Notes: generated by a model from the letters alone, not told the origin. A stretch of DNA of 63,414 bases, filler included, from Lenisia limosa (GCA_001655205.1; 9 parts of 9 records of this genome joined end to end with filler, not necessarily neighbours in it), one strand, 5' to 3'. Shown: positions 13,188 through 25,228, counted from the first letter of the whole stretch. Numbers and translations are program-made.

Positions 13188-16100
13188 CTACGGCCTTAGG
13201 CTAAAGCGAACCGTTTGAATGTGCCAAACTCTTTTGTTGATACTGAAAACATTTCATACATATAATATATAATAAAAAAAAACACAAGCTACTTAGTATG
13301 AGAGAAGATGTGACCGAAAGAGCCAGACTTCACCGAAATGTGGGTCTTTCCCTGGGGGTAAAAAAAGGTATAAAAAATTTTTAGTTAATAAAAAAAAAGG
13401 TAATGATAATTTTTTGCACACAACGCGAACCACAACCAAGCACCCCCCACAGTCAACGCGGCGATTTCGTTCCAAGCACCCTCAACAGTCGTGTCATTTA
13501 CACAGTCAATGTTGACTTGTCCGACCTGGACGTTTCGAGTGTAAGCTCCACAGGCTCCTTGAGAGGTTGAATATGGTGTTATTGTAATAATGTTTGTTTA
13601 CATGTCATGTGTCTTCTGGACACAGTTCAAATATCATCTGATTTGCAGCAAAAACAAAACAAAAGCAGCGGGTCCCTCCTACCGACTCCGACGATGTTGA
13701 AGATGGAAGTTGAAACGGATGTGAACGCGCATGGCGTAGTAACCTGGTGGTCATGAAAACTACTTTTGTTTATGAAAGAATACAATAATAATGGTTTATA
13801 TAGGGTATTGATAAGGGTATTCACAGTTATTTGAGAGCCCGATCGCCTGCATACCAAAGTTGGGGTGTAGGTTGAAGCAGCAACCTCATCGAAGTGGCCG
13901 CCTTGTCCCCACATATACAACTGACCAGCAGAGGTTAGCCCTCCGCCCATGACCCTGAAGGAATCATTGGTAATTTGTTTATGGTATCTCTATGTATTAA
14001 TTTGTTTCCCTAGATTTCTAATGTATATTATTTCTCTTGTTTCAAAAAATAAAATAAAATAACGTCATCTGTAAAAAGTGAGCAATTCATCCAGTGAAAA
14101 AAGACTATTATTGACCTTGGAAACTATCAACATTTTATCGGTCTTTTTCGAACCAAATCCCCAGCTGCAGCCTACCGATTTAGGAAAACAGTCTTAAAAG
14201 TGACTCCATCGGGGACCAGAATTTCTGCCCATCCGCTTGTGTCCTAAATAATCGAATGAAAGATGTAATTGTTAGGGAAAACACTGAAACAATGGCTTGC
14301 GATGTTATGGAGACGAGAAAAACAACAAGAAGTATTTGACCGACCCCCTTCCACACCATCACTACCCAATAGAAATGGAATCCAGAGCATAGCAACCCAC
14401 CCTTGGTGACGGGCAAATGTTAAAGTCCGTGGACCCTCTGCAAAACACCTTGTTGTTTTCTGAGTGTTAACAATTTCTCCACCGAGTAGAAAAATGAGAT
14501 AGTTTCCAAAAAAAAGGATATGTTATCATACACGATATGATTATGTTACACCAATAGAATAAGTTAGGTTATAGAAATTAAAAATAATCACGAAAGTAAG
14601 TTGAATCGATCGGCGGAAGCAATCTCATTTTCATAACCTACCCAATATAATAATGACGGCCTCAGCCACAGTCTGCACCACCTTGATGGCACTGGTTTCT
14701 CCATCAGGGTGTCCAATAAGGTTCAGGTCAACTATCGATCCAACCTGTTTGGTTACAAGACAATGCTTTCCTATTTTGTAATAATAATATCATGTCTTTA
14801 TACCTCGTTTCCACTTGTGATTCATTCAATGTCACTTCATTCATCACTACAAGAGGATATACTGTATCTAGTCGAAGACGGAATAATCAGTATTCTAATA
14901 AATAAAAGAGAAAGAGCACCCCTTCCCACAGTTCCGATTTGCCCAGCAGGGGAGTAACCTCGGCCGAAAAGGTGACCTTCCTCTAGGTCGGGTTAACAAG
15001 GACTGGGATAAGAAATTGGCAAGAGACAGTACTCAAAATTCTGAGACGGAGAGCTCAATCAAACCTGAAAGGAACAATACGCCATCATTTGCACAAATAA
15101 CATCTTTGATTGAAAATGAAGAGGGGACCGTCGGGAGGAGGTCAAGGAAAGCCTTCGTAGTCATGAGCAGCGGCCGTGAAATTGACGTAGTGTCCGAGCT
15201 GATTTGTTAGTGTCCAAGCGCTGTCAACGTAACTGGCGGTACTGTATATGGTGACAATAGCAAAAATACAATTATATAATCACACAATCCTTTTTATCTG
15301 ATATACTCTCCCTACCTATTACGATATCCACACTTACAATTGAACGGCCTTGTAGTTGTTACCGCCCCATCCGTAGATTGAACCGTCTTCTGAAAATTGT
15401 TAGGAAAGTGCCCATTCGTATCAAAGAGTTGATAATTACGATCTCTCCCTCCCATTAGACCCCCATTCAATTTGCTATCAGTGTTGACAGGTCGTTAGCG
15501 TTATGTGATCTCCTGATCTATCACCACCAAGGTTCCAGCTATCTGGTATAATACTGGAATAGGAAGAAATAGCATATGGTACTGAAAGAGTTTTATTTCT
15601 TCCCTGAAGAAATCAATGAACAATCTTGCAACCAAAACCCATGATTACGAACGGGGAATGCCATACCTACCCGTTCTGGCGAAGGTAAAGCGCCAGCCTG
15701 TGAACAGTTGAACCACCTTCGGTAGTGAAAAGGGAGGCTAAATTCACCAAATATACCAAATAGACCAAATAGAGATCAAATGGAAACTTGAATACCACTC
15801 TAATAACTACCTTTGTTAAAATTGTATGGCCATGCAAAGGATGTCTGAGTAGTGATACGATTCATATCAGTGCGATAATTGCACACTACAAAACGTGTAC
15901 TGTGAAAGGGGAGCATTGGTTTCAGTGTGATCATAATATACAATACAAAACGTGTGAAGAACTGTGTGAAGGGACTATTGATTTCATCTTACAACCAACT
16001 TTTTGGTTGGCGAAGAAGCTCCGTGGAATTGCATAAGGACGGGTGACAGTGATATCAGAAGTCTGCCCGTTTCCCAACCCTCCTGCAAAGGATTATGTTA

Positions 16101-18009: not shown

Positions 18010-21000
18010 GGGGGTAAAGCCATCTGTCTTAGCGATCATCTCTTGGGCTAAAGCCGTACAAACTGCGCTGTGTTATAAAAGATGGGTAGTCAGATGAAAC
18101 CAAGAAGAGGGTCCATTCACTCTCAGCATCACTAACTTGCTGCTTTGTCCCGCGATAAGATCGGCAGCGGCCACCGCAGCCGCCAAACTACCCGGCACGG
18201 GGGCTATGGGGTGATGAGGTGCGGGGNNNNNNNNNNNNNNNNNNNNNNNNNNNNNNNNNNNNNNNNNNNNNNNNNNNNNNNNNNNNNNNNNNNNNNNNNN
18301 NNNNNNNNNNNNNNNNNNNNNNNNNNNNNNNNNNNNNNNNNNNNNNNNNNNNNNNNNNNNNNNNNNNNNNNNNNNNNNNNNNNNNNNNNNNNNNNNNNNN
18401 NNNNNNNNNNNNNGAAACTTCCTTTAAAATATCATATTTATGATCCACTTTCTCTAAAGCATTTGAAGACAAGCCTCAAATTCATTCAAATGAGGAAAGA
18501 CTAACCCAACTTTGAAGAATAGCAAATTGGTAATGCATCACCTCCCACCTAGGAACGTCGGGATCGAGCCATGCCCAGCCGCCCATCGGGTCAACGCAGA
18601 GATTATAGCTGTAATTCCAACCACTGCGCCGTGAAGCTTCTCCAGAGGAGGGACCCTCTTGCTGATCTCGCTACACGTCTTGTACTAGAATGTAAAATGC
18701 GTTCCCANNNNNNNNNNNNNNNNNNNNNNNNNNNNNNNNNNNNNNNNNNNNNNNNNNNNNNNNNNNNNNNNNNNNNNNNNNNNNNNNNNNNNNNNNNNNN
18801 NNNNNNNNNNNNNNNNNNNNNNNNNNNNNNNNNNNNNNNNNGGACAAGCCGGCCCAACCCGCGAGCTGCCAACTCTCTAAGGGGGATTATGAGGCAAACG
18901 TTACAGGAGTACGCCATTATAGGAACTGATGTACATCGTATGCCATGTAATTATATCATATCATGGTGCAGTATCGAGCTGTTTCGACAGATCATCATAT
19001 GCCCCGTGAAAGCAATGCATGAGTCCAATGGATTTGGCGCTGACTGAACTGAACCCCCCTCCCCCCTACCCCCTGTGTGCAATAAACATACCTGATGGCA
19101 GGGTCCCAATGCGTAAGCTTTGACGCCACCAGAGTGTCGATGAGAGGCCGGCGATATGCGGAGTAGCTATGGGGGGAGGAGGNNNNNNNNNNNNNNNNNN
19201 NNNNNNNNNNNNNNNNNNNNNNNNNNNNNNNNNNNNNNNNNNNNNNNNNNTTTTAGAAAAGGACTTGTCCACCACTATGGGTCTAAGGAGCGGTCGCGAT
19301 TTGTGAGAAATAAAAATGGAGTCCGGATCTCTCCCACTTAGCCACTTGTGTGGATGTTGTGAGGAAGGCGTTCGTACGGTTGCCGACAAGAAAATAGTCC
19401 GCCAGTTGTACAACCGTGATTCCGTTGGGATAGAGACCCTACAAAGGGGGGGGGGGGTAAATGAGAATATATGAATATCATATACAATTAGTATCTATGG
19501 CAATATCTTAGTATCTACGGCAATATCATATCAGAAAGTTATTCCATATCGATATGTATCTACAGTTATCATAGCATATATAAGTATCTACGGCAATATC
19601 AACCTCTTTTATTTAATTTTGTACCCCTCCACCAGTCTTCCGGTACCCTCTTGAAAAGCAGCGGAGGCGGCTCTTCGACAGTTCACTTCCCGGTCCAAAA
19701 CAGCACAGTTCACCTATCGTGTGACTCAATACGTGGGGTGCAATAGTGATTTGATAGCAGCCTAAGTGGCCATATTATTTGGTATTGCATATGACTGATG
19801 CTGTTCGGGTCTTACAACTCACCAAAGAAGAAGCAATAATGTCGGCATAGGGAGCCATCTAAACAGTAAGGAAAGGGCTGTGTACCATATTGCCATTCAC
19901 AGCCTCCCCCCTCCCTAACATCTTCTTTGTCATACGCCCGCGCAAGGCCCCACGCAATGTAACACGCAGCATCGCGCACGTGACTCCCCACGGAGGCAGT
20001 GGAGGTTGACAGTTCAAATGAAAGGGCCTTGACCAAAATGGGAACCACCTAAGAGCGTCAGCAATAGTCAATTGATTGTCCAAGCAATGCTATTGTGATT
20101 TTAAGGGTTTCTAGTTCTCAACAAAAGCAATCTCGAATATCAATATGAAATGTCCTCCCCAAACCCTATCAAGTAAGTCGATAGGGATGAGGCCCCGGCG
20201 GCACAGCTCGGCAAGAGCTAGACAGTGGCCGTGCCACATTCCATCATCACCACTTGGACTGAACTCGAAAAACATCGACTGGAAGGTAAGGATAAAGTGA
20301 TGCTGGGAAACAGAAGCACGTTACCCCCAACTTAATTTAAATTCCTCAACTTTATCATTAAACATTTCGTAACAGACCCCCGCAGGACCCACCAGGATAA
20401 CGTCTCGCGCCATGTACGAAGGGAGGCGATTGGTGATCCGTCCTAAGCCCTTTGCTGCACTCCAGCGCACTATTGTGTCCTGTGCAATCAGAACTCCACA
20501 CTTAGACCGCAATGAAATTGTAAAAAAAAAAATGGAGCGGGAGAGGGGATGAAAATGTGCCTCTCATATTCAATGCACTGTCAAATCCAAAGTCACAATG
20601 CCCACAATGTCAGAGAGCTTGGCTATGAGCTGTGTTAGCGTCCGCTCCATTTCCTCCCAATCTTGTTGGGACATATCCTGCCCAATGACCGCCATCTATA
20701 GCGATGACACGACAATTTAAACTAACGAAGAGTGTGATATCACTGTGTCCTCCCCCCGCACCTCTTTCAACTCCTCCTCAGTGGGAGTGACAGGGTTCAG
20801 GGGTTTCATCCCATCAGCTGCGGCGGCTTCGGTTCGTTTCACCTGCAAAGATGAGGGCAAAGGAGTAGGGCCAATCCATCCAGACGTTACGTTTTTGATA
20901 TTACCATGGAGTTGTGTTCAGGTTCCAAGACCCAATATCATTGATAGGGAAGTGGTAATGATTTCTGAATAAGCACAGAGCCCACACACGCTCAAGTCTT

Positions 21001-24000
21001 CGATTTTGATATCCTCGAGCGTGAGCTTCTTCCTGGAGTTGCTGTTTTGGTTATCACCATATGTCCAATCGCTGTTCATTCCACCAACTGGCCGCTTCCT
21101 CTGATCCGTTAATGGTAAAAAGAATCACCATAGGATTGTTATTAGAAACACAGAAGATGGGAAAACAAAGCCAATAAAGCCCTGGCCATAGCATCCCACC
21201 TTGAACTCCATCATTCTCTCGAACTCCTCATCATCACTGGGAGGTACATAGGTCTTCAGCCACTCTGTGATCTCCTCCTCAGTCATGCGCTTCATTAAAG
21301 AGAACGTCTCGTCTGTTGCATAAGTGGCGATGACGGTGGAAGGAAATGATGGAGGAACAACAAAAGTAACATGGGGGTGGGACTCACCACGGGGAGGTTT
21401 GATGTGGCCTCGCGCAATAGCCAGAGACATCACCTGCACATAATTAAACTCTGGATATGTACATATAGTATGTATATCATGACTGAAGATATGAAACTCT
21501 CTGAAATGTCCTTTTGGAACATAATTGGGAATCACAACCATGATTTGTTGAGTACACAAAGTTCGTACATTGTTATCCAATAGATTGAACATGACTATCA
21601 CTATTAGATAGTAAAACACTTTGAGTATCAAATAAGCTGGTAGGCCCCAACACTACCTTATCTCTTGCCTCGGCCTTGGTGTAGACATTGTATAGCTTTG
21701 GCTTGGCAGGCATGTTGGTGTTTTCAAAACCTGTACCATTACTACTGTTTTGCCAATACGGCATTAGGGGAGAGGGGGGGGGGTAGAGCAAGCAAAGCAG
21801 CTCTCGGAATTTACCGAGAGAGAAAAAAACAGTATTATTGTGTTCTGCCCCTGCCCCCACCAGGTAATTGAGAGAAGTCATCCGGGGTGTTACTGAGGAA
21901 CTGACGGTTGAATTCCATGATCTCCAGATCTGATGCGGTGGCACTGAGATGAGGGGCAGCTGGAGGGGTTAAGGAAATTACTATTGAAATATCATCTTTA
22001 CCAATAGTAAAAGTAGACCCGAAGGTTGAAAAAAAAACCTGCTGAAGTGGTTCGTACCAGGGTTTGTCAAGATGAAATCGTTCTGGGTATCTGGGGTAAC
22101 AACGGAGCCTGGGGGTACGACGAGACTGTTCAAATCTCTCGGCTGCGAATATATGAGAAGAGAAAAGCAAAACCATGCATAATGACGAGTGGTGCGGGGG
22201 AGGGGGGGGGGGGGNNNNNNNNNNNNNNNNNNNNNNNNNNNNNNNNNNNNNNNNNNNNNNNNNNNNNNNNNNNNNNNNNNNNNNNNNNNNNNNNNNNNNN
22301 NNNNNNNNNNNNNNNNNNNNNNNNNNNNNNNNNNNNNNNNNNNNNNNNATGGTTTAGAACATGAAAAACGGTCACAAGCCAAACCCTACCGGATGAACCG
22401 CTTGATTGACGACAATGCACTTTGTGGGGAGGTTGGAGGGCAATCTACCGTCCTTGAACACCGCCTTGTTAATGATGCAGTGGTCATCGGAGTTGTCCCA
22501 TAACTCGCGAATGTCATCTGGCACCCTATCATGAGGGAACTCCTCACACTGTTAAGGTGAAATATTGGATTTTGAGTTGATCATTATTACAGTGAGTGGG
22601 CTGAATGACGCCGTATTTTTTATCTCCCCTCTTTACCCACCCTTCTCGGGAGCAGAATGGCGGCAGTGTCAACGTCCTGGGCTTTTCCCTCGTTATCGAG
22701 GCGATCGTCGATTTCTGTCCGCTCCTCTGTAGAGAATTAAGGAGTATCATTGGGACAAAGGACAAAATAACAGTAGTGATGCATATACATATATAATTGT
22801 CAGTGAACCATGGAAAGTAACTATTTGATACAAAGAACTATTTGATGTACTCAGTCAATAATTACCTGGGGTATCATCATCAAGAGGCATCATGCGGGAT
22901 CCTAAAAGGTCAAAATACAGCAAAGGGGTGGGAGTGGCGTTAAAGACCAAAATAATGTTGCACAAAGGGGCACTGTCCAAAGCAAACAAACCTCGGCTGT
23001 AACGCCATTTGGCCACTTTAGGGGGGAGGCGAAGAAGTGCGCATCTAATGACATATTATCCAGAGGATATTGCGAAATATATAGCAATGAGAAATAAAAA
23101 ATAAATTGTATCTGGCCGAAGCCGTCNNNNNNNNNNNNNNNNNNNNNNNNNNNNNNNNNNNNNNNNNNNNNNNNNNNNNNNNNNNNNNNNNNNNNNNNNN
23201 NNNNCATTTGCCTGACAACTCTGTGCACACGGCTTTAGAAAGGGAAGAGAAAGCATAACGCCAACCTTTGGATCAGTTTTGCTGACAATTTTCTCACTCG
23301 TGGCGGCAGGGTTCTTGATACATCCCTCACTCTAGACAATGAAAACCGCAAAATGTGAATACAAAAAGGATCTCTGACTGAGGTGGTGGCTTTATTCAGT
23401 TTTGTTGTTTTCCAAGCCATCATAATAATACTTCCAAGCATACTGGTCCAGAATCAGGTGGATGTGAGGGAGCAGAACGTCGCGGTGTCCGACTTTCATA
23501 ATACGGGCCAGTACCACATATGAGCCATTAACCTGTAGCAAATGAGTCGCCCATACAAATCTCCAAAAAAACTGGGATTATCGTAGTATCGAAATCAAAG
23601 ACGCTCAAAATCCAACACTATATCGAAGCAATACAGTCAAAGACATACCATGAACGAGGTTGACTTCGGGTCAGTAATTGTCCCCACAGCTTCCTGAATA
23701 AAGCCAGGCAACAGGCGACTTTGGTCTCTTCTGACAAATCATCAAAAGGGGTGTGCCCCAAAAAGACGGATCTCATGCTACATACCAACACTAATCAAAC
23801 CCCCATGGTAGTTTCCAGACCCCCAAGTCCCATGAAAAAAACATCAAGTCCGGTTGCATAGTGACAGAATCAAACAGTACGGGATAAGTCTGAGATTACC
23901 TTGTGAGATAACGCGCAATGAGCAGTCCAGCCACATCCACTGTTGGTCCTGCGGTGGTTAGAAGTCCAGCCATCCACTGTTGGTCCTGCGGTGGTTAGAA

Positions 24001-25228
24001 GTCCAGCCACATCCACTGTTGGTCCTGCGGTGGTTAGTTATATTGATATTCGTACGCGTATGTAATATGATAATGCCTGTAATGCCTTGTAAATAGTCAA
24101 TGCAGTTCTAATTCATTGGACATATCACCGCCACGTACCCGATTCCAACAGGCTTGCCTTAGCCAGGTTGGGGAGGGTGTCAGCTAGCCATTGGCGTTCG
24201 TGTTTCTAGTTGATGACAGTAATAACAAAACTTTGTTATCCTTTCATGTTGGACAAAATAATAGAGAGAAACAAAAAGCCTTCTTTTGCTTCTGTTGCTA
24301 AATGAGAACGTACAAAATCACTCGTACCAACTCCCCTTTACCTTGGAAGTGAGTGTGTTGAGGTCAAACGGGACAGTGACGAGTGTACACAGCCAGAGTA
24401 GGATGGCGTACTCGGCATGCCAGCCTTCATAAGGACGGTCATCGGTGTCGTCCTGTCTACATTAGAGAGCAAAGTTTTATACCATTGGATGAATCTCATT
24501 CGGCCCTTTCTCATATAGATTTTTTTCAAATATAGATTATGCCTCCTCAAGAAAATAAAAAATACAAATGACTACGTGAATTATGACACGGATTTTATTT
24601 GGCGAAGTAGCCCTGAGCACCCGGGTGTCTCCGCGTTGAGTGACAGCTTGCANNNNNNNNNNNNNNNNNNNNNNNNNNNNNNNNNNNNNNNNNNNNNNNN
24701 NNNNNNNNNNNNNNNNNNNNNNNNNNNNNNNNNNNNNNNNNNNNNNNNNNNNNNNNNNNNNNNNNNNNNNNNNACATTCCAAGTACAGTCTGTGCACACC
24801 GCTACTACCCACAGATCACATACCCCCATACAGATTGTCTTGAAACCGCGGACTTTTGAGAGGATGTAAATCACAAAAGAAACTGCGTAAAGCACTGAAA
24901 GGATCAAGGGAGGTGCAACAAAGAAATTCAACAAATGTCAGCAACGGTATTCCTCGAATACAACCGAATTTGGCCAACCTTCATAGTTGCAGTTGTCAAT
25001 ATTCTTTGCAAGAGATCTGATATGTGTAACGAGAGGGTCAAGAATAGTTCTCAGGTGGGGGTCTAGTAGAGAAGGCTGGTCTTGGTAGATCTGCAATATA
25101 TCAGCAAGCTCAACAGCGGCGAAGAAAGGGAAATGAGTCTGTTTTTCGGCAATAATTCCGCATAATTCAACAAGCCTCTCCTTTTCCTTGACAAAGGAAG
25201 AGAAGAGGGCCGCTTGTTTGTCTTCCAT
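18010..25228 (-). CDS. TBCD: Tubulin-specific chaperone D (cofactor D), N-terminal ~half plus a large internal insertion; 3' part lost at contig spacer
   Basis: Spliced exons give [158 protein letters not shown], all hallmark TBCD motifs in the expected order. Confidence 0.93.
23925..24037. repeat. Tandem triplication (39/37/37+ bp) spanning branch point, 3' splice site and exon start in TBCD
   Basis: Unit GTCCAGCC(AC)ATCCACTGTTGGTCCTGCGGTGGTTAGAA x3; minus strand reads CTAACCACCGCAG|GACCAACAGTGG... Confidence 0.9.

Follow-up and report, generated by a model that had tools for sequence, protein, structure and literature searches.

A probable eight-exon block in the linker of TBCD

We have analysed a stretch of 63,414 nucleotides from Lenisia limosa (GCA_001655205.1; 9 parts of 9 records joined end to end with filler, here called the window), in which the gene for TBCD (tubulin-specific chaperone D, Cin1 of yeast) contains a block of eight very probable exons that is absent from all the orthologues sampled. 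With a probability of about 0.6, we consider these to be real internal coding exons of TBCD that form a module lengthening an acidic linker with a largely disordered chain. TBCD, a highly conserved protein, is indispensable as a scaffold of tubulin biogenesis, and the human protein has an acidic linker between the motifs WRYxRG and RWSxAKG. Recent cryo-electron microscopy reportedly shows 26 HEAT repeats closed into a ring, with scant space for additions. This ring serves as scaffold for TBCE, Arl2 and beta-tubulin (PMC12881605).

A preliminary description of the locus, made from the sequence, listed ten extra exons besides three canonical ones, and all thirteen are present where it had placed them, on the minus strand and each flanked by AG and GT (Table 1). 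Once joined, they can be read in a single frame through 373 codons without a stop, as far as ...ARDVIL. The description had counted all ten as an insert of some 280 residues. A large block of probable coding exons is there, but only eight of the exons (22548 down to 20762) are really extra, amounting to 768 nt or 256 codons and both beginning and ending in phase 0. The two that precede them, 22866-22901 and 22641-22726, encode 40 acidic residues and probably correspond to the ancestral acidic loop that is normal for this protein. Between the end of WRYSRG and RWSAAK the full model has 330 residues, against 51-82 (median 58) for the same loop in 119 orthologues, while skipping the eight exons would leave an in-frame loop of 74 residues, within the orthologue range. 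The loop is short in every orthologue sampled, and to this extent the description holds. The genomic distance between the two motifs tells the same story, with 2440 nt in L. limosa versus 168-432 nt in 19 of 20 metagenome TBCD loci and 1030 nt in the other one; these 20 are the loci in which both motifs are credible, the matches to the search pattern in L021 and L022 (WKFIYG) being spurious and excluded. When the joined model was compared by tblastn and blastp with 120 orthologues and 43 metagenome TBCD loci, no similarity to the block beyond noise was detected.

The history of the block is probably as follows. Within the linker, acidic and poorly conserved, that connects the WRYxRG and RWSxAKG helices of the HEAT-repeat ring, there would have been an ancestral phase-0 intron, and this intron would now carry the eight-exon, phase 0-0 module. 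Once spliced in, the module would extend a surface linker from ca. 74 to 330 residues, leaving the flanking HEAT repeats untouched, so that the core of the chaperone could remain functional. Given its symmetric phases (0-0), the block may be either constitutive or an alternatively spliced cassette.

Identity of the gene and continuity of the assembly

The gene is TBCD. Exon 20393-20479 matches the Pfam family ARM_TBCD_2nd with 40.3 bits (cut-off 29.7), and the product of the N-terminal exon, available publicly as protein P0001, carries PF23579 (ARM_TBCD), although this match was graded weak. The closest match in the protein library is a 1209-residue protein of the fungus Basidiobolus ranarum (P0002), and tblastn with this protein and 120 orthologues gave ordered high-scoring segment pairs (HSPs) from 10001 to 19881 on L001, a gapless 30.4-kb contig of ENA that we found via P0001. 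One tract of this contig, 14614-14988, with the end of exon 20606-20695 and exon 20393-20479, aligns with up to 120 orthologues. The regions of both motifs, WRYxRG and RWSxAKG, are conserved between this gene and its orthologues. In the canonical exons, identity to other TBCDs is ca. 40% whether these come from fungi or from animals, and it does not exceed ca. 58% with L004, the best metagenome locus. Divergence is strong in the N-terminal exon: an exhaustive HMMER search of 1.84 billion representatives with this exon as query gave a single non-self match, a fungal TBCD with 48% identity over 40 residues, together with P0001, which is a read-through fragment of the present locus. The library therefore holds no close relative of this TBCD.

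A second stretch of the same gene also fails to align. It covers 16380-19418 of L001 (18003 to ca. 18500 in the window, continuing past the edge of the piece, which cuts the gene short), that is, 3039 nt where P0002 has 155 residues, and the distance between the neighbouring HSPs is 3513 nt here versus 1119 nt in L004. Within it there are several open segments, acidic or hydrophilic, whose codon score is positive, and it may be another lineage-specific expansion.

An assembly gap (22215-22348) falls within the intron between exons 22390-22548 and 22058-22142. L001 agrees with every piece of the window at 100% identity, and where the gap lies it has just 53 bases, of ordinary intron type. This makes the intron 165 nt long, leaves no hidden exon in it and preserves the continuity of the frame. 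Besides, one run contig spans 19251-22214 unbroken, and contig depths are even (25.9-27.2). All this speaks against a chimera in which foreign DNA had been fused to the TBCD locus at the gaps or close to them. What can be said for such a chimera is that there are two scaffold gaps, 22215-22348 and 23127-23204, the second of them adjoining a highly repeated element of 50 nt, and that the two assemblies probably derive from the same reads and are not fully independent, so that a scaffolding error is ruled out but not every error of assembly. With a gapless contig colinear across all pieces, we find a chimera scarcely credible.

The repeated element is a dispersed repeat of ca. 50 nt at 23074-23126, in the minus-strand intron just upstream of exon 22992-23044. 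Contig depth on it is ca. 9000, compared with 26-37 nearby, and many contigs terminate there. It is probably the cause of the adjoining gap 23127-23204, which measures 57 nt in L001.

Coding signal of the exons

It had been put forward as evidence for the insert that the phases of its exons chain without stops. This argument cannot be maintained. We used a dynamic-programming search for in-frame GT-AG chains linking the two canonical exons (up to 10 exons, each of at least 30 nt, with introns of 60-400 nt), and in 98 of 100 dinucleotide shuffles of the interval a chain of 890 nt or more was obtained, which means that compatible phases carry no weight as evidence. The real sequence permits in-frame chains of up to 1379 coding bases.

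Other signals, however, set the ten exons apart from what chance produces. In the proposed frame their triplet periodicity (codon position by base) gives a chi2 of 73.5, whereas shuffling these exons stop-free gives 9.1±4.6, with a maximum of 28.2 in 1000, and the intervening introns give 2.5-3.9. Purines make up 66% of first positions, A makes up 37% of second positions, and the GC content of third positions (GC3) is 62%. The splice sites also look like genuine ones: G precedes the junction in 9 of 10 donors (background 0.25, p = 3e-5), CAG is found at 9 of 10 acceptors (background 0.34, p = 5e-4), and the fraction of pyrimidines upstream of the acceptors used is 0.64, compared with 0.49 for all AG sites. 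GC content is 46-59% in the exons and 31-50% in the introns. As for codon usage, the extra exons resemble the canonical TBCD exons, on which alone our codon table was trained, and their summed log-odds are +27.8 bits in the proposed frame versus -102 and -101 in the other two, while introns are mostly negative; against composition-matched stop-free shuffles the score stands at z = 2.2. From periodicity, splice consensus, GC contrast and codon usage together we are highly confident that the ten exons are coding. Individually, the weakest are the 36-nt exon 22866-22901, which is the weakest of the whole chain and is preceded by a 90-nt intron that is itself stop-free in frame, and exon 22058-22142. 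Exon 20990-21100 has the sole non-consensus donor of the chain (AGC/GT).

These figures also bear on the simplest alternative, namely that the interval is a plain long intron and that the chain has been over-fitted to non-coding DNA. The shuffles show how easily that could happen, the searches made found no homologue and the available RNA run gave nothing over the interval. Nevertheless, a periodicity more than twice the null maximum and the enriched splice consensus would be hard to obtain in this way, and at every boundary there is a sharp switch from an exon translation that is hydrophilic and protein-like to an intron translation that is hydrophobic and pyrimidine-rich. We regard over-fitting as very improbable.

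Proposed inclusion of the block in the TBCD transcript

The block opens with a CAG acceptor that has a single open codon upstream, its first in-frame ATG lies in its third exon, and it closes with a GAG/GT donor without any stop within. Having consensus splice sites at its outer ends, no early ATG and no stop, it behaves as internal exons would; on its strand it is flanked by exons of TBCD and by no others. Were it not spliced in, an intron of ca. 1.9 kb would be left, compared with 66-223 nt for the modelled introns and 194 nt for the one joint confirmed by RNA. The look of internal exons, the TBCD neighbours and the short modelled introns favour inclusion in the TBCD pre-mRNA. What we infer here derives from anatomy and intron lengths, and skipping of a cassette, or an alternative end, would be fully compatible with the anatomy.

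One way of accounting for the same exons is that the middle ones belong to a separate gene on the same strand, nested in a long TBCD intron, the in-frame link being an artefact of compatible splice sites. The ease with which in-frame chains arise by chance fits this idea, as do the lack of similarity between the block and TBCD or any of the 120 orthologues, and the difference in GC3 between block (62%) and canonical exons (53%). Against it, the block starts at an acceptor with no ATG, its first Met being in the third exon, finishes at a donor, and has no start exon of its own to be seen in the 92-nt intron upstream. A nested gene seems improbable to us.

Another possibility is that the block does belong to TBCD but is mostly skipped, or provides an alternative 3' end. 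The main isoform would then join 22641-22726 to 20606-20695, and a minor one would include the block or stop after 20762-20842. By phase arithmetic the donor of exon 22641-22726 could splice straight to exon 20606-20695 in frame, both sites being phase 0 and the block being exactly 256 codons; the skipped form would have a loop of orthologue-like length; and if the donor of exon 20762-20842 were left unused, read-through would meet an in-frame stop 14 codons on (ca. 20720). On the other hand, the strong periodicity and the codon usage suggest sustained selection on the frame of the block, and the 1.9-kb intron required for skipping would exceed in length every other intron modelled for this gene, by a factor of ca. 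8. On balance predominant skipping is unlikely, though it deserves to be taken seriously.

Several points weigh against the internal coding exons of TBCD that we prefer. The boundaries of the exons are not unique, since other in-frame chains through the real sequence also came out of the dynamic-programming search. The training set of the codon table was small (ca. 430 codons), and for exons 22866-22901 and 22058-22142 the best codon score is that of another frame. Two sequencing runs were used, the DNA source run and one polyA metatranscriptome of the same study, and this sole RNA run yielded a single TBCD contig, 280 nt long and from downstream exons, with none over 20393-23044; its joint, 19437/19632, is a minus-strand GT..AG junction that skips 194 nt. 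Finally, the searches brought up no relative with the block, which leaves conservation unavailable as support, and the absence of distant relatives of the insert was only weakly tested, since the query of the exhaustive search was the N-terminal exon.

Nature of the encoded chain

The block is rich in Asp (10.3%), Glu (9.1%) and Pro (7.9%) and has few aromatic residues. In charge-hydropathy terms the loop as a whole lies on the disordered side, and only residues ca. 60-140 of it lie on the folded side. It had been said that most of the insert is not of low complexity, and this is so, with an entropy of 3.6-3.9 bits per 40-residue window. It had also been concluded that a folded domain was inserted in the chaperone, and for this we see no support: the block is acidic, proline-rich, mostly on the disordered side and, searched exon by exon, matches no family, and AlphaFold2 run on its largest exon alone (22390-22548) gave a pLDDT of 58.6, which is low confidence.

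Searches for relatives of the insert were made mostly with single exons. Taken exon by exon, the eight insert exons of at least 20 residues matched no Pfam family even at E<=10. In sequence searches of the PDB, exons 22390-22548 and 22058-22142 had no hit with E<=10, and exon 21388-21433 with the following intron and exon 21200-21312 had a single match, at chance level (E 1.9). A word search with exon 22390-22548, covering only proteins of 29-93 residues, gave no candidate, and one with exons 21388-21433 and 21200-21312, which lie in an open frame of 175 residues, returned only the locus's own public call (P0122). For exon 22390-22548 there was no usable match in the ESM Atlas and no relative in a scan of JGI metagenomes, and scans of viruses and prokaryotes for relatives of the insert gave nothing.

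The added chain would be acidic, proline-rich and mostly hydrophilic, with a short, more hydrophobic stretch contributed by exons 22390-22548 and 22058-22142 and a probably helical acidic stretch by exons 21388-21433 and 21200-21312. The reading that we favour is a surface excursion, flexible for the most part, with an acidic helical stretch and perhaps one small structured element, and it is most likely that such a chain would be largely disordered, possibly bearing short docking elements, rather than an enzyme-like domain. We have also considered that the block, or just the hydrophobic core of 22390-22548/22058-22142 with the helical part of 21388-21433/21200-21312, could be a compact undescribed domain, which a deep-branching eukaryote would have added to its TBCD ring by exon insertion, as an extra partner-binding or regulatory module; this appears distinctly unlikely.

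Other features of the locus

The coordinates of the exons and of the intron that bears the gap are collected in Table 1.

Table 1. Exons of the TBCD chain and the intron with the assembly gap, in window coordinates
Feature	Position	Strand	Basis and remarks
Canonical TBCD exon, N-terminal edge of loop	22992..23044	-	tblastn to P0002 residues 315-333; AG/GT flanks
36-nt exon, probably start of ancestral acidic loop	22866..22901	-	TAG acceptor, CAG/GT donor; negative codon log-odds
86-nt acidic exon, probably ancestral loop	22641..22726	-	Ends ...LLPRR at phase 0; best codon log-odds of all exons, +17.9 bits
Chain exon 4, block exon 1	22390..22548	-	53 residues, phase 0 start; most hydrophobic, strand-like part; splice flanks, codon score
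Gap-bearing intron	22143..22389	-	True length 165 nt; L001 12822-12986 gapless, both flanks identical
Chain exon 5, block exon 2	22058..22142	-	Splice flanks, frame; no Pfam/PDB match
Block exon 3	21861..21959	-	Frame, splice flanks, codon score
Block exon 4	21657..21730	-	Frame, splice flanks, codon score
Chain exon 8, block exon 5	21388..21433	-	Frame, splice flanks, codon score; followed by 75-nt stop-free intron, a multiple of three
Chain exon 9, block exon 6	21200..21312	-	Acidic, predicted helical by composition; frame, splice flanks, codon score
Block exon 7	20990..21100	-	Starts RKRP, basic and polar; frame, splice flanks, codon score
Last block exon	20762..20842	-	Ends phase 0; frame; GAG/GT donor
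Canonical TBCD exon, C-terminal edge of loop	20606..20695	-	Phase 0 start; exon end within L001 14614-14988
Canonical TBCD exon	20393..20479	-	Pfam PF25767 ARM_TBCD_2nd, E 3.1e-10

Seven of the 12 introns in 20480-22991 have lengths that are multiples of three (90, 165, 75, 99, 147, 66 and 126 nt), an excess that is not significant (p ~0.07), and the exons from 21388-21433 through 20393-20479 all lie in one genomic frame. Public databases hold two read-through "proteins" of the locus, P0122 (291 residues) and P0001 (175 residues, with TGA read as Trp). With introns of this kind and a common genomic frame, a gene caller of prokaryotic style would read straight through, hence these two calls.

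Between N-terminal exons within TBCD there is a 39-nt tandem repeat (23924-24037, ca. 3 copies, 95% alike). Head to head with TBCD, whose ATG is at 25228, lies a gene for a leucine-rich-repeat protein on the plus strand (25755 to ca. 26900), and the two share a divergent upstream region of ca. 500 nt.

Significance and comparison with known systems

This TBCD is probably a variant of a known protein, with a lineage-specific exon module in an acidic linker between repeats. If expressed, an in-frame module of 256 residues would show where the TBCD ring tolerates large excursions, and it could mark a lineage-specific regulation or localisation of the chaperone. It is, nevertheless, an observation on a gene model from a single genome of a sparsely sampled organism, and large lineage-specific loop insertions are common in protist proteins. 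The main practical value is for annotation, as this TBCD needs to be modelled with the guidance of RNA, and there is a caution of general use in that chains of phase-compatible exons are by themselves not evidence.

Compared with TBCD as it is known elsewhere (families PF23579, PF25767 and PF12612), the canonical exons of the present gene are colinear and the motifs are kept. The difference lies in the linker, 330 residues in the full model versus 51-82 in orthologues; the short linker typical of the family is recovered, at 74 residues, when the eight-exon block is skipped.

A faint resemblance of the insert to the RNase-H motifs of PIWI, raised in the preliminary description, finds no support. 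No alignment with a PIWI profile was obtained on which the residues of the DEDH/DDH catalytic tetrad could be placed, and the motifs are too closely spaced, as the description itself had noted. Single-exon queries found no Pfam family (two exons) and no PDB chain at E<=10, and what the block shares with PIWI/Argonaute (PF02171) is only short, loosely spaced look-alikes (IVV ... PPGSVV ... DFIL). From "KDG" to "IVV" there are some 10 residues in the block, whereas in the PIWI domain several tens of residues separate the corresponding motifs, and, taken whole, the block is hydrophilic and acidic with much proline.

A further parallel is with the lineage-specific, largely disordered insertions known as a general phenomenon in conserved protist proteins. 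Like them, the block is hydrophilic, acidic and non-conserved, sits in a surface linker of an essential protein and is absent from the orthologues, and a similar tendency is suggested by the other unaligned stretch of this gene (L001 16380-19418). Unlike many of them, it is not of low complexity. It does not look like a repeat expansion either: with its eight short exons and symmetric 0-0 phase it is more like an exon module that has been acquired.

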